Origin: Sminthopsis crassicaudata
Lineage: Eukaryota
Assembly: GCF_048593235.1 (NCBI RefSeq)
Contig: NC_133622.1
Location: 204,135,198-204,199,197 of the forward strand
Length of the DNA: 64,000 nt
Direction: 5' to 3'
Of the stretch, positions 3,600 to 32,597 are shown in pieces. Every line of letters starts with the position of its first letter. Positions within the stretch are counted from its first letter, which is position 1. The notes beneath the pieces were generated by a model that was not told where the DNA came from, ran no database searches, and saw only the letters and a program-made list of their open reading frames with translations. The position numbers were made by a program, and so were the translations under genes.

Positions 3600-3991
3600 T
3601 CTTCACTATTCTTTTTTCCTCTTTCTTTCTCCCTTCCTCCCTCCTTCCCTCCTTCCTTTCTCTTTCCTTCCATCCTTCCTCCCTCCCTCCCTTTCTCTCT
3701 CCCTTCCTCCCTGCCTCCCTTCTTCCTTCTCTTCCTTTCCTCCATCCCTCCTTNNNNNNNNNNNNNNNNNNNNNNNNNNNNNNNNNNNNNNNNNNNNNNN
3801 NNNNNNNNNNNNNNNNNNNNNNNNNNNNNNNNNNNNNNNNNNNNNNNNNNNNNNNNNNNNNNNNNNNNNNNNNNNNNNNNNNNNNNNNNNNNNNNNNNNN
3901 NNNNNNNNNNNNNNNNNNNNNNNNNNNNNNNNNNNNNNNNNNNNNNNNNNNNNNNNNNNNNNNNNNNNNNNNNNNNNNNNNNNNNNNNNNN
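3600..3991. repeat. (CCTT)n-like pyrimidine tract ending in an N-gap (3754-3991)
   Basis: Seen directly. Confidence 0.9.
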
Positions 3992-4559
3992 NTCTTTCAG
4001 AGAAGAATGGACTATCTTATTCATTACCACAACTGGCTTCTGGCAAAAACTGTTTAACTTCTGCATTTTCCAAGTCTTAATGTTAGCCTGAGGGATTGTA
4101 GTCTACATCATTTTCCAGATCCATTGTGACAGATGATGTAAGGTAAAATTCATCTCTTTATATTGGAGTACATTTACAAGGTCATTTCCAAGGTATGTGG
4201 GAAGCACTAGTAAAGAGACAGCACTGCCCTGTTTCCAAGCTCCCCCTGCCTGAATTTATACAGATTCCAAATCCACTTATATTCTTCTTCCTAGCTATGA
4301 CCCAAGCAAATAAAATCAAATGTATAATTGAGCTCATTGGGACTATTGGAGGAATGAGAAAAGGGAATCCCTGCCATAAAGGAGCAAAGGTGAGATGTGA
4401 ACTGGTCTTGCCTTCCTTTTCCCCTGCTGAGTACAACATCTGGTTGCTGCTGTTTGATATTACATTGCTTTTTATGGATGCTCCCTACCTTTCCTCTTGC
4501 TTTCTGAGACCTCAAAGAAGTGGAGTTAAGTTGGGGGGGGGAGATGAGAAAGAGGGGGT

Positions 4560-12779: not shown

Positions 12780-13950
12780 TAAGGAAAACCCAATTGATGC
12801 TGAGTGAAACAAGCAGAACTAATAATACATTGTACACAGTAACAGAAAGATTAGGTGATGATTAACTATGAAAGAATTATTTCTTCTCAGTGGTTCAGTG
12901 AATTAAGGCAGTCCCAATAAACTTTGAATAGAAAACATCATTTGCATCCAGAAAAAGAACCATAGAGACTGAATGTAAATCAGCACATGCTATGTTCACT
13001 TCCTTTTTCTGTTGCTTTTTTTCTCTCCCATGGTTTTTCTCTTTTGTTCTGATTTTCTTTCCCAACATGATTCACAAAGAAATGTGCATTTAAAAAGTTA
13101 ATATACGTGTATAAGCAGAAGAAAATAGAACAATTAATAAACAACAAAAAAAGAAAAACCCAAGATGTTAACCCAGAACACTGAAGCAAGTTCCCAGGAA
13201 GAACAGGGAGTTAGAAAAAAAAAGAATGTTTTGGTTGCAAGTAGTCCAAGAATAATAGAAGAGATAAAACTAAAATTGGATCTCCTAAGGAACACATTGG
13301 AAAGACAAAAATGAACTTATAAGAGAAAACAAACAAAACACATGTAGTAGACTCTCTGAGAGAAAAGAATTGAATAAACAGAACACAGTGATTCAATAAA
13401 ACAACCAAGAATATTACAACAAAGCTAAAAGAAGGGAAAATTAAGATGTATTGCCTAATATCAAAAACAAGCGAACTAAAAACAGGTTAATTAACACATC
13501 ATCACACAACCTAAAAACTATGATCAAACAAAAATTCAAGATATATTTCAAAATATCATAAAGTAAAACTAATCAGATGTATNNNNNNNNNNNNNNNNNN
13601 NNNNNNNNNNNNNNNNNNNNNNNNNNNNNNNNNNNNNNNNNNNNNNNNNNNNNNNNNNNNNNNNNNNNNNNNNNNNNNNNNNNNNNNNNNNNNNNNNNNN
13701 NNNNNNNNNNNNNNNNNNNNNNNNNCCTAAAACAAGCATCTGAGAGATTCTAGTCAAAGAAAAAATCCTGCAAGCAAACAAACAATGAAATAGCTCAAAT
13801 CCCAAGATACTTCACTCAGGATGATCACTCAGATGGGAGACTTCACATAAGACTAATTGGCAACTACAGAAAAAAAAAATATTATGAAATACAATATAGA
13901 CAATTCTCACTTTACATAAATTTACTATTATGCAAATTTACTAGAGGTGT
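12780..13950 (+). mobile_element. Old L1 fragments (3'UTR and ORF1-like), spanning an N-gap
   Basis: gatgctgagtgaaacaagcagaac ORF2-end motif, 3'UTR, and gaaaaaatcctgcaagca ORF1 motif. Confidence 0.6.
13583..13725. other. Assembly gap (N)
   Basis: Run of 143 N. Confidence 0.99.
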
Positions 13951-16009: not shown

Positions 16010-17094
16010 AAAACAGCATTTGTGAAATGGAAAGAATCCAATGAACAAAACAACTCCTTTTAAAAGTTCAGTTAGCCAAATGCAAAAGGACATTTGAAAA
16101 AAAGCTAACTGAAGGAAAATAGCTCACTAAAAATTAAAATTGGACAAATGGAAATAAATTATTCAATTCAATTCAATTTCAAGAATCAATTAAACAAACA
16201 AACAAAAATTAAAAAAAAAATAATTAAATAAAATATCTCTTTGGAAAAACAACTGACCTGGAAAATAGATCCGAGAGACATTCTAAAAATTATTGAACTT
16301 CCTGAAAACCATGAAGATCAAAAACAAACAAACAAAAATATTCTGGATAACATCTTTCAAGAAATCATGAAGGAAAACTGCCCTCATAGCCTAGAACAAA
16401 AGAGTAAAATAGCCATTGAAAGAATCTACCAAACACCCCCTAAAAAAGACCCCAAAATAAAAATTCCTAGGAATATTGTAATTAAATTCCAGAATTATTA
16501 GATCAAAGTGAAAATACTGCAAGCAGCCACAAAAAAAATAATTCAAATACCATGGAGCCATAATCAAGATTACCTGGGAGCTATCAGCTTAGACTTTGAA
16601 GGATCAAAGGCCTGGATATGATATTTTGGAAGCAATGTAGCTTGAATTGCAGCCAAGACTCAATTACTATGCAAAACTAAGCATTATCTTTCAGGGGAAA
16701 AGATGGACATTTAATGAAATAGGGGATTTTCAATTATTTTTGTTGAAAATACCAGAGCTGAATAGAAAATATGATCTTCAAATTCAGAACTCAAGAGAAG
16801 CATCATAAATAAAAAGGAAGGGGAGAAAACTCTTTTTAAAGGTTAAGAATGTTAACATCCCTTAATGGGAAGATAATATGTGTAGCTTTTGAGAACTGTA
16901 TATTTGTCAGGGGTATACTTAGAGGGTATAGGTATAAGTGGACTTTAATGTGACAGTATTAAAAAAAATATATGGGTGAAAAAGGGATCTTATTGGAAAA
17001 AGAGGAAGGGGACATAAATGGAATAAATTATATTATGTGAATAGGAATAAAAGATTTATTACATTTGAAAAAAAAAAAAAAAAAAAAAAAAAAA
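14014..17094 (+). mobile_element. 5'-truncated young L1 (ORF2 3' part 14036-15631, 3'UTR, polyA) plus about 1.06 kb of 3' transduced DNA and a second polyA
   Basis: 531-aa ORF2 C-terminal ORF; polyA at 15973-16007 and 17068-17094; 16-bp TSD GAAAGTAGCTAGCCAG at 13998-14013 and 17095-17110. Confidence 0.92.
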
Positions 17095-17110
17095 GAAAGT
17101 AGCTAGCCAG

Positions 17111-17370
17111 TAGCTAAGTGGGTAAGAATTGAAACTAGAGTCAGGAAGACTAGAGTTCAAATGTGACCTTAGAATCACTAGCTATGTAACTCTTAGCAAG
17201 CAAGTCACTTAACCTCTGTCTGCCTGAATTTCCTCATCTGTAAAATAGGGATAATAATAATAACACTTACTTTGCAGGGATATGAGGATAAAATTTAATA
17301 GTTTCTAAAGTGCCTTGCAAAAACCTTAAATCATCATATAAATTCTAGTTGTTATTATTGTTGTTGTTGT
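17111..17370 (+). mobile_element. MIR-type SINE adjoining the L1 insertion target site
   Basis: gtcaggaagactagagttcaaat..tttcctcatctgtaaaatagggataat. Confidence 0.75.
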
Positions 17371-18205
17371 TCTAAGTATTAAGATAAATAGGCCATCACT
17401 ATTTTGTCAACACTTTAAAAAAATGATAATGGTACAAATACTGAGGGACAAACCCAAAGACACTAAACACTGGAGAATGGATAATCAGAGGTAGATTCCA
17501 GTGGTTCTTTATACAAATAAAAGCCCCGAAAGGAGCAAAGAGAAATAATACTGAGGGTAATAGTCAATAATCAATAAAGCTAGACACTAGCATTGGCCAT
17601 TGGAGAAGGGAAGGTAGATATTGGGAATAGCTGAGTATGAGAAATATAGAATCCAAGCAATCAGTAGCAAAGAAGAACAGGTTATTGGGGGGGGTTATGG
17701 AATTATTACATAGAAGAAAATTGCTAAGTGGAATAGCAATGGAGTGTTAACTGGAAGTCTAGTCTGGGACCATATTTTTTCCCAAATTTATTTTTATTTT
17801 TATTATCTTATTTTATATTTATATTATATTTATGTTATTTTATTATTTGAGGTTTCCTTGGATAAGTACTCTTAAGTGACTAGGACAGCAACAAAAATCA
17901 GGAACAGAGTGACTCAAAGACCAGGTTCAGACTTGACTAGGAAATATACAAAGTCACTAATACCAACTCTATGATGCCCATCTGGGATTTGACAGGAGCT
18001 AGAATCAGGATCAAAGTATCATAGATAACAGACTAGGGCCTGTTACCCTGGGTATAAAGAGAGTCAGGCAGGCTCATTTTGGGTTAGAAATTCTGTTTAT
18101 TGAATGTCTCCATGGCAGCAGCTACAACTGTGTGCACCCCAGAGGCTCTTGACTACAAATGTATCTCACAAAAATATGAGGAAGAAGCAAGAAGGAGAAG
18201 GCAGC

Positions 18206-18347
18206 TCAATATTTGGGATCCAGGCCTGCTGGTCTGAAGTGATTGGGATCTTTGCCACTTCGGCCCCATCTGTTGGCTTCCTGGTCTTTCATGGAATCTT
18301 CAACATTTCGGCCAAAGCTGCCTCCCTGTAAGAACTCTCGGCCATCA
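18206..18347 (-). CDS. SAA: SAA-A last coding exon; joined CDS complement(21548-21650, 20801-20939, 18206-18347), 127 aa
   Basis: Acceptor ctttcag|T, then [52 protein letters not shown] on the minus strand at 18096-18101. Confidence 0.95.
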
Positions 18348-18839
18348 CTGAAAGATAAGGAGTTTAAAGAAATAAGTGCCTCTGGATCTGTCTATTTGGT
18401 CTCCATCTCCCTCATGTCTGATGAGAAAGAGGATAACACAATAAGAGAAGATAGAAACCTGGGTGGTGGTACTGCCATGCAAGCATGCATCCCAAAGCTG
18501 GGGCTCAGGAATTAATTCTGTACTGTGCACAACTCAGCTCCTGCCAGGGAGCCTTTGCCTTCTAGAATCAGCCTAATGGGAATAAGTGGCTTAGAATCCT
18601 CCTCACATGGCTAAGGAGGGAATTGGTTTTGATTGCTTATACAAACTTGTAGTAGGTTTTTCTTGCTTTCCGAGGGGGTGAAGGAAGACAAGGTGAGTGG
18701 GAAAGAATTCAAAAATTAAAATAAAATTAAACTACTTTAAAAAAAAAAAGAAATAATTTTTACTTAGTCTGTGTTAATGGATGATAATGCTATCTAAATG
18801 AAATGATTTACTCAGTACCATAGCAAACTACAAAAAAGA

Positions 18840-20270
18840 GTTACTTTACAGAATTAGGAAAAAAATTAACAAAATTCATTTGGAGGAATGGATGATGACA
18901 AATCTCAAGGGAAGTAACAAAAAACAGTGAGAAAGATGGAGGCCTACAAGTACTAGCTCTGAAACTCTGGTACAAAAGAACAATCATCATAACTCTTTCA
19001 TACTGTTTTTTCTTAAAGAAAAGTTGATCAATAAAACAGATTAAGGACACAAAATATGAATAAGTATAGCAGCTTAGTGTTTGGGAAAGTCAAAGACCCT
19101 GATAAGTAGAGTTGGATTTCACTGTTTAACAAAAACTATTGGAAAAACTAGAAAGTAGCTAGGCAGAAATTAGATCTAGATGAACATATACACAGTGAGT
19201 TCTGAATGGATATAAAACCCAGATATAAAAGTTCAAATTATATACAAATTGAAAGAAGGGCATATGTTTCATAATCACGAAAATTATGAAAACATAATTT
19301 GTGCAAGAACAAATCAGTAGAAAAAATAATGAGTGATAAAAATAGGCTATTTCAATTATAGAGAATTGAACCATTTTTGCACAAATAAAAGGGATGAAGC
19401 TAAATTAAAAGAAAAATAGTTAACTCAGGAAAAAAGTCTGTGATAAAAGTTTGATGTCCAAGATAACTGCAATACTCACTGAGTCACATAAGAACAAGTG
19501 CCCTTGCTCAAGACTATGAATGGAAAGTTCTCAAAAGAAAAAAAGATAACAGTAGTCACATAAAAATTCCAAATCATTAATAGTAAAAGAAATATACATT
19601 AAAACAATTTTAAGACTCCATCTCATTGACATCACACTGGAAAAGATAACCAGAAAGGAAAATGATGATTCTGGGCTGGGTCATAGAAGATGGGAAGGCT
19701 AATTCTCTGTACATAGTGCTGTGAATCGGTACAGCCATTTTGGAAAACTACTTGGGTCTATATTCAATGAATGGGTATAGACAGAAAATGAATAAACCAG
19801 GAAAATCATTTATTCAATGGATACCACATTGTAAAGAGAAAGAAATTTGAATAATGAGGGCCTCATCTCCACTCAATGAACATAGAAAACTCCAGACGAT
19901 CAGTGAGGAAATGTGCTTCTCACCTGACAGAAAGCTAATGGGAAGAATAAGATATAAACTCTCAACAAAGCAAATGTTTCTATTAATTTAGCTTGACATT
20001 ATTAATTGGTTATGAAGGAAACTTTTCATAAAAATATTGTCAGAGAAGAGAGTTTGAAAGAAGACCAGCTGACTTTTATTGCACGTGAAAATGTGGAAAT
20101 ATATTTCAAAGGATTGTAGATGTATAACCTATATCAGATTGCCTGCTGTCTTGGGAAAGGGGAAATAAGACAGGGAGGAAGAAAAAATTGGAACACAAAG
20201 TCTTACAAAAATGAACATTGAAAATTATCTTTACACGTACTTTGAAAAATTAAAATACTGTTGAGAAAAA
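18840..20270 (+). mobile_element. Old degraded L1 ORF2 and 3' fragments in the last SAA-A intron
   Basis: Decayed ORF2-like A-rich sequence, e.g. ttggaaaaactagaaagtag, and an L1 3'UTR-like tail. Confidence 0.6.
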
Positions 20271-20800
20271 AGAAAGAAGAGCAGTGAGAATGAAAAGAGA
20301 AAATAGCATCAGTGAAGCATCTAAGAAAGCACAGAAGAAACAGAAGGAAGTTTGTGGGTAGACACTGACAACCAGGACAGTTTGGGGACTAACATATTGA
20401 ATAGATAATATGCTTGTGAAATTGGCAATAGCAGAGATTCACAGTGACAGATAAAGACTTCCATTTTGTTATTCTTTCTATATGGAAATGTTCTTGTGAT
20501 GGTGTCAGACAAGTTCAGAATAACTACAAATAAAAAATGCTTAAAAAGAAAAAACTAAATCTTCTCCCCAACCTGCCTCTCATTTGATGCAAGGTCAATA
20601 CTGACAGCACATGAAGCCCTGCTTTTTTCTCTGCTGCTCAGACAAGACTGATAGCTACTGCTCAGGACCCTGCTCTGGCCCCTGGGATACAGAGAAGGAG
20701 GAGCAGCCTCAGGAAGTTCATTCATGGACTTTTGGAGGCCTCTGGGAGCCCCAGACAGGCCAAATATGCTTCATTTTCAGAACCATTCAAAAATTCATAC

Positions 20801-20939
20801 CTGATCACTTCAGCTACCCAAGCCCCACCAGGTCCTCTCTGGGCAGAATCATAGTTCCCCCGAGCATGGAAGTATTTGTCTGAATTTTTATAGTTGGCTT
20901 CCCGCATGTCCTGGTAGGCTCTCCACATGTCCCCAGCAC
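20801..20939 (-). CDS. SAA: SAA-A middle coding exon (139 nt)
   Basis: [47 protein letters not shown]; acceptor ttctag|GT and donor CAG|GTATGA; canonical SAA exon length. Confidence 0.97.
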
Positions 20940-21547
20940 CTAGAAGGGCAGAGCAATGGCAGAGGCAGCCTGAATCAGAAGTAGGACTCTGACAACATGG
21001 ACCTGGCTCTAGTGGGGAGTGAGACTTCTCTTAGATGCGAGATTTTTGGAAATGGATGGCATGGGAAAGCATCTCCTCCCACCACTGGTCCCCAGTGGAA
21101 ATGACAAATCAAGATAAATCTTATAACATTTTGTTGTGCTAATAATACCTAAAATATGGAACAAAGGACTCTGAAAACATGATTTCTCCTGAAAGTGTAG
21201 TATTTTAACTCCTCTTTTATTATTGCTCCATTTCTTTCAGAGAAGATCCAGAACATCAAAATCCATCTTGAAGCATTCTTAAGCAGAAGATTCTTTCCTG
21301 TTTCATGGGCTCGCCAATGCAGCTTAAAAATCTTTCTTCCCATCAAGTGGGGGATGGGGAGACAAGTGGGGAAGGACCATTCCTACAACCCTGCCTTTGC
21401 CATTGCTCAGGTACCAGAGTCTATTTCTGGTTGCATTTGCTCCCACCTCCTCCTCTTTTTCTTTGCAGACAATTTCCCTTTTCTCATCATTCCCTGCTCA
21501 TGCAAAGCAACTCTATCAAAGGTGACACGTTCTTTAAGAGCCCTTAC

Positions 21548-26969: not shown

Positions 26970-27072
26970 ATGAAGCTCATCACAGTCATCCTCCTCTTCT
27001 CTGTGGTCCTCTGTGTTCAGAGCCAAAATTGGCTTGTAGATTCTGCAAGATTTATGAAGGAGGCTGGTCAAG
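26970..27072 (+). CDS. SAA: SAA-B first coding exon; joined CDS 26970-27072, 28092-28230, 28379-28511, 124 aa, SAA3-like
   Basis: MKLITVILLFSVVLCVQSQNWLVDSARFMKEAGQ-G; donor G|GTAAGC. Confidence 0.95.
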
Positions 27073-27876
27073 GTAAGCACTGTCTGTAAAAAGATGAACG
27101 AGCCTTAATATTTATCAAGGTGCAAGGGAAATCCAGAGGAGTCGAGTTCATATTTTGCTTCTGAAACCACTGGCTCTGTGATCCTGGGCAAAGCACCTCA
27201 CCTTTGAGTGCCCAGACACCTCTCCAAGATGAAGGTCTAGAGCAGGTGCCAGTCCTTGTGAAGGAGAATTTCCCACCACAAGTTCCCCACTGGGAACAAA
27301 GCTGGACAATCCAAGCCAGAACTTTAGAGCTTCAGGGCTTGGTAGTATCAATATCTGAGTTTATCAGGTGGGCTCTGCTGCCCAGCTTAAGAAAGAGGAC
27401 CACCAGGATGGGCTAGTGTCCTACACAAAAGCAGGCCTCTTCTCTGAAAAAGACAAAGGTCAGGAAGGGAGAGAAGATGCCATGAAATACAGAACCTTGT
27501 ACCAGGGCAATGGTAGGGTTTGGGCAAATGGGGCCGAATGTAAATGCAAAGAGTCTAGTTCCGAACATCATCAGCCATACAGGTTATGATGAAGAGACCG
27601 ATCAAGCTACAGATGGATCCTAGTCAATATTTTTTGTTGTTTTTAATTAAGCTTTTAATTTTTAAGCTATACACATGGATAATTTTCAACCGGATCAATA
27701 TTTAAACTGGGGCAAAAATGACAAATTTTGAATTATATTTTCAGATTCAGTGTTAGAAATGGTAAGTTTTATTTTTTTAATAATGTAGGTAATCTGCTAT
27801 TTCAACATATTATTTCCATGAATACCATCAAACTAGGGAGAGGCAGCCAGGAACTAAGGAGAGCCCAGGAAGATCA

Positions 27877-28018
27877 ATTTTTTTCCGAGGCAATTGGGGT
27901 TAAGTGACTTGCCCAAGATCACACAACCAGGAATGTTAAGTGTCTGAGGCCAGATTTAAAGTGAGGTTCTCCTGACTTCAGGGCTGATGCTCTGTCCACT
28001 ATTCCAACTAGCTTCCCC
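27877..28018 (-). mobile_element. WSINE1-type SINE in SAA-B intron 2, absent from SAA-D
   Basis: TSD AAGATCA at 27870-27876 and 28019-28025; single copy at the empty site near 42862. Confidence 0.85.
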
Positions 28019-28091
28019 AAGATCAGTCTTTAAATCTGAATTTATATTATTGGTCCACCTTCCCTTTTGACTCAAAGAAGTCTTTTTCTAG

Positions 28092-28230
28092 GTGCTGGGG
28101 ACATGTGGAGAGCCTACCGGGACATGCGGGAAGCCAACTATAAAAATTCAGACAAATACTTCCATGCTCGTGGGAACTTTGATGCTGCCCGGAGAGGACC
28201 TGGTGGGGCTTGGGCAGCCAAAGTGATCAG
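28092..28230 (+). CDS. SAA: SAA-B middle coding exon (139 nt)
   Basis: [47 protein letters not shown]; canonical AG/GT. Confidence 0.97.
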
Positions 28231-28378
28231 GTAATCACTCCCCATGTCAGCTTGCCTAGAATTTGCAGATGAAATCCCAGAAAAACTCACTATGGGACGA
28301 TATTTCCTTCTCCTTTTCCATGTGTCCCCAAGTACAAAACCGCTTTCTTCATCTATTTTCTACCTTTCTGTTTTCCAG

Positions 28379-28511
28379 TGATGGCCGAGAATTCTTGCAG
28401 TTTGGCAGCAGTGGTGCAGACTCTGATGCAGACCAATTTGCAAATGAATGGGGCAGGAGTGGCAAAGACCCCAATTATTTCAGGCCCCCTGGTCTGGACC
28501 CCAAATACTGA
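28379..28511 (+). CDS. SAA: SAA-B last coding exon
   Basis: [43 protein letters not shown]; AATAAA at 28603-28608. Confidence 0.96.
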
Positions 28512-29095: not shown

Positions 29096-30110
29096 CGGAA
29101 GGGATGCGGAGAGTGACGGGCAGCAGGTAAGGGATGCGGAGAGTGACGGGCAGCAGGGAAGGGATGCGGAGAGTGACGGGCAGCAGGGAAGGGATGCGGA
29201 GAGTGACGGGCAGCAGGGAAGGGATGCGGAGAGTGACGGGCAGCAGGGAAGGGATGCGGAGAGTGACGGGCAGCAGGGAAGGGATGCGGAGAGTGACGGG
29301 CAGCAGGGAAGGGATGCAGAGAGTGACGGGCAGCAGGGAAGGGGCGCGCGGGGGTTCCCGGCGGTCCCCCATGGCCGGGTGACAGACTGGAGCCGGAGGG
29401 GCCTCAGGTCACTTCGCCCAATCCCCTTTTTCGCAGCAGTCCCGCGGTTAAAGGGCCTGAAACGGCGGCTGCGGTCCCTCGGACTCTCCGGGCGCCGGCG
29501 CCGTGTCCGGGGTCTCCTCGGCGCAGACCCCGGGCCGGGTCAGTGCTGTCCCCCAGCGGGGATCCGAGGTCCCATCGGGCCCGGCCTCCTCGGCTCCGGG
29601 CCGCCGCATGCAGAGGGAGCAGCAAATTCCTGCTCCTTCCGCCCCCTGACGCCCGGCTCCCACAGCGCCCCAAAGCCCGGGGCCCGCTGCTCCTTCCCGG
29701 GGCTGGAGACACGAGCTCTGCCGCGCTAAAGGGAGAGGCGAATCCGCTCCCTGCCCCCCCCCCCCCCGTTCCCGCCGTGTCCCCCCCACGCGGGCTCCCC
29801 TGAGACAGCGCTCGGAGCCCAGCCCGACGCCCAGCCACGGCTCTGCCCCCTCTCCGTCCGTGCCCAGGGCTCTCCTCTCCTGAGAAAAACTCCGTAACCG
29901 GAGGCATGGGGGGGAGGGGGTGTGTGTCTGCAGAGACTTCTCCGAGGGAAAGAGGCGTGTCCCGGGTTAGCCCCGCCCCTTTCCCGAATCTCCTCCCAGG
30001 TGGCTCGGTTCTAGGCAGTAAAGTAGCCGGAGCCTGAGTGTGGAGCCCGAGTAACCTGAGAGCATTAGAGGCGGCCCGGAGGTGTTCCGCTTAGAGAAAA
30101 CCCTTCCGAA
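28730..30110. promoter_or_regulatory. CpG island, gene not assigned
   Basis: Very GC- and CpG-rich. GC box CCCCGCCCC near 29971 and ETS-like CCGGA/TTCCG motifs near 30025-30110. No recognisable protein in any frame. Confidence 0.7.
29101..29340 (+). repeat. 30-bp minisatellite, 8 copies
   Basis: Unit GGGATGCGGAGAGTGACGGGCAGCAGGGAA; only copies 1 and 8 carry a single mismatch. Confidence 0.97.
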
Positions 30111-30972
30111 GTACACACTTTTTTTTTTTCTTTTTAAAATTTCATTACTGCCATTTGCTAACTGGCTTCATTGCCTTGGTTTCCATTTCTGATTTAAAAA
30201 GAAAATTAATAATAATTTATTTTTCCAAATACATGCAAAGATAGTTTTCAGCATTCCCCTTTGTAAAAACCTTGTTTTCCAAATTATTCTCCCTCTCCTT
30301 CCCAAGACAGTAAGCAATCCAATATAGGTTACACATGGAGAACACAGCTTTAAAGAATCATTTGAAAGGCTGTTAAATGAAAATCCCCACACACCAAATA
30401 TTTTCACAGTAGTAAAGAAGTGGAAAGAAAGTAGATGCCCATCAGTTAGTGAATGGCTGAAAGCACTGTGTGTGTGAATGTGACACTGTAAGAAATGACA
30501 CATATGATGAATATAGAGAAGCAGCAAAATAGTGCAACGAACAAAATAAGCAGAGCCAGAAAAACAATATGCAAAATGACAACAATGTAAATGGAAAGAA
30601 CTGCTACAAAATAATCAGTACTGAATACTGCAAAACCACCAAGAACGAGCTTGGTCTCAAAGAAGAAATACCAGAAGACAATTCCTTTTACTCCCTAGAA
30701 GAGATGGGAGGTTCACAGGTATGATATATAGCATGTAGTCAAATTTTTAAAATATATCGATCAATTCTGCAGAATTATTTTTTTCAAAAATTCTTTATTG
30801 TCAGGCATCCTATATAAAGTAGGATTCAGACAGGTGATTGAACTACATGACCTCTAAGATTGTTTCTGATGATAGGATCCTAACAACAAAAGTATAAAGC
30901 TCAGTAAGAGATATGGTATGATTCTGTAAACACTGTACCCTTAGGAAATGATTTCTTGAGACTTGGCCCTAT

Positions 30973-31508
30973 TTACACAATTTTAAAAATGGGGTCCATC
31001 TGGTGACTGGTAGTTGCCACAATAGCCTGACCTTTCCCAGCCTTCTTCTTGCCTTCCACTTCATCTCTGTAAAGAAGAGACTGCAGGTAGTTAATGTACT
31101 TGATGGCCGCTCGGAGGGTTTCAACTTTACTGAGGCGCTTCTCCAGATATTCCTCGGGCAGGTGATGACGGAGCTGGGCATAGCCTTCATTGACACACTT
31201 GACTCTCTGTCTCTCCCTTTCATTTCTTTTCCTGATGAATGCTGGACCATAGGAGTATTCACATCTTCCATAAGAGGCATCTGAAAAGGGAACGAACAAG
31301 AATCTCCAAAGTTTTCCACAATCAGCTGCTCTGTTGCAAAAGGGAGCACTAGCAGGTCTTCAGAGTAAGGAGATGGGGCAGGGGCCTCTGGACAGAGGTG
31401 GAAAGTGACAACAGGGTCCAGGTGGAAAGACCGAGTGAGCTGCATGTGGGGAGAGTCACTAAAGCTGGGCAATTTGTCAGTCAGATTACAGTAGTTTTTG
31501 TTATCCAT
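30973..31508 (-). pseudogene. ASCL3: ASCL3 coding exon with a 7-bp deletion frameshift at about 31273
   Basis: N-terminal MDNKNYCNLTDKLPSFSDS...FQMP and C-terminal YGRCEYSYGPAFIRKRNERERQRVKCVNEGY...DPIFKIV* are each colinear with human ASCL3 but in different frames. Span is 536 nt versus 543 expected. Confidence 0.9.
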
Positions 31509-32597
31509 TATTTTCTGGATAACTGGAAGTATAAACAAATGTATTAATCCATCCAACAACATTTCAAATAAATAACATAATAACAATAAGCCAAATTACA
31601 GTTACAGATCTTCTAGCTCTAGACCTGGGTTCTTTCCACTACACTATGTTCCATCTTCTGTCACCCAAAAGAGTTATCTTCTTAAGGTGCTTCTGTTATG
31701 TGGGATGTTCAGTATTGCTTCTTATCACTTTGAAAACTAGATGGTGTATGTCATTGTCAGAGAAATAAAGCAGTTAAAAACCATTCAAAATCCAGAAGCA
31801 TAGTGGGTTTTGATGCAATTCTGATAGGTGAAAAATTAGATTCAAACTGATAAATTAGAAGGTATTTACAAAAAATGCCACAGGAGTTTTCAAATATTGA
31901 TTTACAAAAATGCTTCTTATACACAACTTGACATCCAAGCTGTTGGATAAGCTGAAGTACTTCTATCTATATTTAGTTCTCTTCTCATTGATAACAAAGG
32001 GACAAATATCCTGTCTCAGAGTGTGGTTTGACATGTCATTTCTTTCTGCATGAGTATGTCATCACCAGATTACTCTATTTTGCCATGACTTTCTGCCAGC
32101 ATATAAAATTTTGGAGTTGGAAGCAGCTTTCAAGGCCCAACCCATTAGTGAATGTGAACTAAATATGTTCTCTACATTCCCTTAGGTTTGGCCTCCAGAA
32201 CCCACCACCTCCTGAAGCTGTCTATTCCACTCATAGTTTTAATTAGAGGGAAATTTCTTCTGATATCAAGTCTAAATTTGTCCAAAGGTTGGAAAACACT
32301 GAGAATTTATTGGATCTTGACTGGTGATTTCATCAGTGTCAGTTTTCATCTGTAACTTAAATCCATACTTGTCAAAGACCAAGTTGGGCCCAGGTCTTCT
32401 TGACTCCAAAGCAGGTGCTTTATCCACCACACCAAGTTATATCCTTGTTCTATATTGCTCTAACAAGCCCAGACATTTTTTTCATACAGACTACTATCTA
32501 GTTTTATCTTCCTTTGTAACCTTTCTTATACAACTCAACTGATGCTTCACCAGAAGCACTTGTCTGCCAAGAGTGTTCCATAGGAAAATGTTTTCTC

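Follow-up and report, generated by a model that had tools for sequence, protein, structure and literature searches.

The ASCL3-like sequence in the analysed stretch of Sminthopsis crassicaudata DNA (64,000 nucleotides, hereafter the window) is very probably an unprocessed ASCL3 pseudogene that arose by DNA duplication and represents the positional orthologue of the ASCL3-like gene of Antechinus flavipes. The original prediction was that ASCL3 itself had been inactivated or recently lost in this species. This part of the prediction fell, as an intact ASCL3 of 180 aa is located 85.3 kb away, in the interval between TMEM9B and C11orf16. A dying duplicate had been named as a further possible reading, and it is this one that is borne out by about 3.3 kb of homology to the canonical locus, by flanks that are colinear with those of Antechinus ASCL3-like and by a dead counterpart in the Tasmanian devil.

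The lesion itself was described correctly. On the minus strand of the window, which represents one assembly, positions 31280-31261 read ATG CCT CT TAT GGA AGA TGT, and a DNA alignment with four other dasyurid ASCL3 copies gave the same reading. All four carry the 7 nt CCGTATC after the ATG at 31280-31278 (CAGATG[CCGTATC]CCTCTTATGG), which are absent from the window copy (CAGATG-------CCTCTTATGG). As had been claimed, the loss lies outside a homopolymer: none is visible in the alignment, and CC on both sides of the gap forms a 2-nt microhomology. ASCL3 codons 1-77 are consequently found in one frame of the minus strand, the bHLH and the C-terminus in another. The frame starting with the ATG at 31508 reads MDNKNYCNLTDKLP...FPFQMP and then passes into a continuation that lacks the bHLH, while the second frame comprises the bHLH and the C-terminus (YGRCEYSYGPAFIRKRNERERQRVKC...IFKIV), followed by the TAA at 30975-30973. 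When marsupial ASCL3 proteins were compared with the window by tblastn, two HSPs in the frames -3 and -2 were obtained, which abut at 31275-31278; the same search revealed no additional ASCL3 copy elsewhere within the window. The copy is 96-97% identical to marsupial ASCL3 and possesses a bHLH of the achaete-scute type, its nearest protein matches being marsupial ASCL3 sequences with that of Sminthopsis crassicaudata closest. The downstream piece matches the Pfam HLH family, and for the N-terminal piece no Pfam family was matched.

Translated from its ATG, the window copy would thus yield a product in which 77 native residues give way to 101 unrelated residues, without a DNA-binding domain. 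In the bHLH frame, no ATG is found from the last upstream stop to the bHLH. Both the loss of the bHLH from the frameshifted product and the lack of an alternative start codon in the bHLH frame, as originally predicted, are therefore confirmed in the assembled sequence. Counted from the ATG, the shifted frame contains no stop over 179 codons and ends 4 nt beyond the normal stop. However, each of the other four dasyurid copies likewise has 102 open codons in this alternative frame, so its openness reflects the sequence as such and does not speak for a new protein. The corresponding ORF (30969-31586, minus strand) matches the real protein in length, and ORF length alone would conceal the lesion. 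A public gene call exists at exactly 30973-31508 (536 nt, with a product of 178 residues and no Pfam match) and gives the impression of a low-quality model with a corrected frame. A word search of a protein collection with the N-terminus and its frameshifted continuation (query to 31110) returned the normal ASCL3 cluster only and was uninformative. The coordinates of all features are given in Table 1; segment identities, private-change counts, dN/dS and the word-content comparison refer to positions outside 31069-31107.

Table 1. Features of the ASCL3-like copy and its neighbourhood (window positions; identity refers to the canonical dunnart ASCL3 locus).
Feature	Positions	Strand	Identity
Codons 1-77 of the ASCL3-like copy, from ATG 31508 to the ATG of Met77	31278-31508	-	
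Deletion junction, CCGTATC absent; placement ambiguous by 2 nt (flanking CC)	31275-31278	-	
Remaining coding sequence in the shifted frame: bHLH, C-terminus, TAA 30975-30973	30973-31277	-	
Pfam HLH (PF00010, E 2.6e-18), out of frame with the start codon	31081-31230	-	
Splice acceptor and 5'UTR stretch ahead of the ATG; AG retained	31509-31530	-	
Duplicated segment: coding exon and non-coding flanks, homologous to the canonical ASCL3 locus	29247-32597	-	
Upstream segment	31684-32597		90.0%
Gene tract	30802-31683		98.5%
Junction at which the ASCL3-like copies lack 2.65-3.2 kb of canonical sequence	30799-30802	.	
Segment downstream of the junction	30266-30799		96.0%
GC-rich tract (64-76% GC), counterpart of canonical flank	29377-30265	-	99.1%
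Serum amyloid A-like neighbour gene (P0135, 124 aa)	26970-28511	+	

The genome search for a second, intact ASCL3 that had been proposed as a check was successful. The canonical dunnart gene (XP_074132130, P0122) is located at CM109186.1:204,080,342-204,080,884, encodes an intact protein of 180 aa with an HLH domain and is flanked by the Tmemb_9 (TMEM9B) gene and the DUF4537 (C11orf16) gene. The window copy corresponds to CM109186.1:204,166,170-204,166,705 on the same strand, and the window agrees with the CM109186.1 locus of P0135 in each of the 21,542 positions compared (16970-38511). Its first letter hence falls at about 204,135,198 of this chromosome, which belongs to assembly GCA_048593235.1, assigned to the fat-tailed dunnart in a preprint. 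With an intact ASCL3 in canonical synteny on the same chromosome record, ASCL3 is not lost in the dunnart; presumably, it is this canonical copy that carries the function. Both copies are much alike. Outside the gap their coding DNA is 98.8% identical, the bHLH is identical, and splice-acceptor context, chromosome and strand are shared. However, the window copy differs in the missing 7 nt at codons 78-80, in three amino acids, in its location within the serum amyloid A (SAA) cluster instead of the TMEM9B-C11orf16 interval, and in the lack of 2.65 kb of the parent's 3' flank. The canonical gene (L002:10001-10543) has private changes of its own, C7Y and P20A, and the pseudogene retains the ancestral residue at both positions.

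The conserved position between TMEM9B and C11orf16 is not occupied by the window copy, whose neighbours are SAA genes. As the adjacent gene P0135 is an SAA gene, identified from a search with one exon-bearing ORF, the locus belongs to the SAA cluster and lies outside the TMEM9B-ASCL3-C11orf16 interval. When the canonical loci of devil, dunnart and antechinus were compared with the window, their 10-kb flanks matched it only at about 29247-32597, apart from dispersed repeats. The duplicated segment comprises approximately 3.3 kb; its homology continues through the splice acceptor for about 1.1 kb on the upstream side and reaches about 1.7 kb on the downstream side. Such homology in the flanks is in line with a duplicate that has neither a poly-A tail nor a retrocopy structure, and an intact parent gene exists in the genome; the retained non-coding flank homology and the acceptor site rule out a processed, i.e. 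retrotransposed, pseudogene. Each of the three canonical loci contains a block of 2.65-3.2 kb, homologous between them, which the ASCL3-like copies of both dunnart and Antechinus lack. The 3' breakpoint of this missing block is identical in both copies and the 5' breakpoints lie within 10 nt of each other. In addition, the Antechinus ASCL3-like locus matches the outer flanks of the window copy over most of 20 kb, with a few blocks reordered. These common flanks and the common missing block rule out a separate duplication in each lineage and, together with the location of the devil duplicate beside an SAA gene, point to one duplication before the split of Sminthopsis, Antechinus and Sarcophilus. 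A literature search yielded no publication on a duplicated ASCL3 in marsupials.

Some aspects of the neighbourhood deserve mention in their own right. A block of about 5 kb (window 17084-21527, L003:3294-8435) is located immediately upstream of ASCL3-like in Antechinus, whereas in the dunnart it is found about 10 kb away and on the opposite side of the gene. The SAA cassette region has been rearranged between the two genera. Stretches resembling SAA exon 3 (…DKYFHARGN[YF]D…) occur at 20857-20880 (minus) and 28151-28222 (plus), hence on opposite strands and flanking the pseudogene's side. The window furthermore contains two runs of N, at 3754-3992 (239 letters) and 13583-13725 (143 letters).

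The counterparts in two other dasyurids differ in their state of preservation. Antechinus flavipes ASCL3-like (XP_051822050, P0133; L003:10001-10543) is located 114 kb from its parent. Like the window copy, of which it is the positional orthologue, it has colinear flanks, lacks the same 3'-flank block and has been homogenised with the parent gene of its own species. In contrast to the window copy, its frame is open over 180 codons (180 aa). Its private changes comprise 8 non-synonymous and 4 synonymous ones, compared to 0 and 2 in its parent, and two of the amino-acid changes, A92T and N109S, fall in or beside the basic/helix-1 region. The C-terminal motif IFAIV is common to both Antechinus copies. 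The duplicate of the Tasmanian devil (Sarcophilus harrisii; L006:14944-15490 and L007:14943-15489) is found beside an SAA gene, with its parent about 91 kb away, and is plainly dead. Two TGA stops interrupt it, one at codon 7 and one near codon 31, the latter accompanied by an insertion of 6 nt; in addition, helix 2 contains 4 inserted nt, and 3 nt have been deleted. All these lesions are identical in two assemblies. No gene is called there. The middle third of the devil duplicate is nearly identical to devil ASCL3, which suggests that gene conversion may have acted in this part of the devil copy, too.

The dunnart copy shows signs of decay besides the deletion. Private to it are the non-synonymous changes Y29H (31424-31422), P53L (31352-31350) and P159A (31041-31039) and a synonymous change at P32 (31415-31413). 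These three plus one changes are too few for a test of relaxed constraint, and likewise the dN/dS of 1.4 for the dunnart pair is based on only six changes. The private changes hit residues that are conserved across all marsupial orthologues seen. Just before the ATG, the copy differs from the canonical ones by the loss of 1 nt (at about 31523) and by clustered substitutions. The bHLH had been described as clean, and indeed the part downstream of the deletion equals the dunnart's own ASCL3 except for P159A.

This cleanliness had been read as a sign of a recent event. To understand it, the relations between the paralogues, as obtained from site-pattern counts and distance matrices, have to be considered. 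The similarity of the window copy to its parent is a mosaic of sharply bounded tracts (Table 1). In the tract 29377-30265, the dunnart pair is 99.1% and the Antechinus pair 97.4% identical, whereas identities between the species are only 80-87%. The sites shared exclusively within this tract number 73 for the dunnart pair, 22 for the Antechinus pair and 0 for the two ASCL3-like copies, and the identity contrast to the upstream segment (99.1 vs. 90.0%) is highly significant (Fisher p 2e-19). Paralogues within a species are hence more similar than orthologues between species, as is characteristic of concerted evolution. Based on these patterns, patchy gene conversion with the parent keeps the duplicate at 96-99% identity, and 29377-30265 is the most recent conversion tract. 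Its canonical counterpart sits just before the coding start of C11orf16. Close to this tract, at 29097-29343, a minisatellite is found (30 bp, 8.2 copies, 98% matching) inside a tract of 64-76% GC. In the gene tract, the paralogues diverge by 1.5%, compared with 10.4% for orthologous non-coding sequence of dunnart and antechinus, a ratio of about one to seven. Given gene conversion, a clean bHLH alone cannot date the death of the copy, and it is explained better by gene conversion than by recency alone. Thus only one part of the proposed recency can be retained: the 7-nt deletion postdates the last conversion over its site and is recent in that relative sense only, while the duplicate itself predates the split of the three genera.

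Could the deletion be an artefact? In that case the dunnart ASCL3-like copy would really be intact and the 7-nt gap would stem from assembly or polishing, perhaps with a contribution of its 98.5% identical paralogue. The deletion is indeed seen in one assembly, the remaining ORF is clean, the open Antechinus orthologue makes an intact copy in the dunnart conceivable, and the public 536-nt gene call with its 178 residues resembles a frame-corrected model. Still, we consider this explanation unlikely. The gap comprises 7 nt outside any homopolymer, and the two dunnart paralogues are separated by further indels that are multi-base and evolutionary in look, unlike homopolymer noise. Mixed reads of the paralogues would not produce a deletion that is absent from both copies. 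The private non-synonymous changes and the altered acceptor region of the window copy also speak against an artefact, as does the multiply disabled duplicate of the devil. Furthermore, sequencing runs from three studies contain 0.72-0.92 of the 31-mers sampled from the stretch, of which the canonical copy can supply at most 0.64; copy-specific sequence, though not specifically the junction, is thus seen in more than one data set. Runs at 0.57-0.67 may contain the parent only. From these sequence data we infer that the deletion is probably real in the animal and that the copy is probably non-functional.

If real, the deletion might in principle be read in two other ways. It might have hit the species' sole ASCL3, as a recent loss or a null allele, and a bHLH that cannot be read in frame from the only ATG is what one would expect then. 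However, given the intact 180-aa ASCL3 in canonical synteny on the same chromosome record and the lack of such synteny in the window copy, the probability of this scenario is practically nil. Alternatively, the frameshifted copy might work, either as an ASCL3 N-terminus with a new tail of 101 residues instead of the bHLH or through rescue by recoding. The shifted frame, open over 179 codons, would permit such a product, but the same frame is open in the other four dasyurid copies irrespective of any selection, the N-terminal part has no Pfam match, no evidence of a slippery site was found and the devil counterpart is dead. A working frameshifted copy is therefore highly improbable, and the window copy is best regarded as an unprocessed pseudogene with an intact parent nearby.

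The following history would account for these observations. In a dasyurid ancestor, about 3.3 kb containing the ASCL3 coding exon and its flanks would have been copied into the serum amyloid A cluster, landing 85-114 kb from the parent in the same orientation. The copy would since have drifted, while gene conversion repeatedly replaced patches of it with sequence of the functional parent. The loss of 7 nt at codons 78-80, probably through slippage or microhomology at CC..CC, would have occurred in the dunnart lineage and shifted the bHLH out of the frame of the start codon.

The main value of this analysis is a correction: as ASCL3 is not lost in the dunnart, no inference on salivary-duct or ionocyte lineages can be drawn from the window copy, which is very probably an ordinary unprocessed pseudogene. 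Besides, the dunnart is an emerging laboratory marsupial, and some caution in annotation and read mapping is advisable. With a 98.5% identical pseudogene 85 kb off and a full-length open shifted frame, ORF callers as well as short-read expression and variant analyses may confuse both copies. The locus also provides a small example of one old duplicate that decays independently in three dasyurid lineages and is patched by gene conversion.

In humans, sequence exchange between an unprocessed pseudogene and its nearby parent is known from CYP21A1P and CYP21A2, with an 8-bp deletion, and from the NCF1 pseudogenes, with a GT deletion. The dunnart pair resembles these systems in several ways: parent and duplicate lie tens of kb apart in tandem orientation, the hallmark lesion consists of a small deletion that shifts the frame, and gene-conversion tracts form a mosaic. 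In contrast to the human cases, neither a transfer of the lesion into the parent nor a phenotype is known for the dunnart pair. That the pseudogene and the functional ASCL3 are still exchanging sequence is quite improbable in our view, as is, separately, a role of the open Antechinus copy as a second working ASCL3. One might nevertheless speculate that, if the exchange continues, the 7-nt deletion could enter the parent and give rise to ASCL3 null alleles in dunnart colonies or in the wild, comparable to what is known from CYP21A1P.
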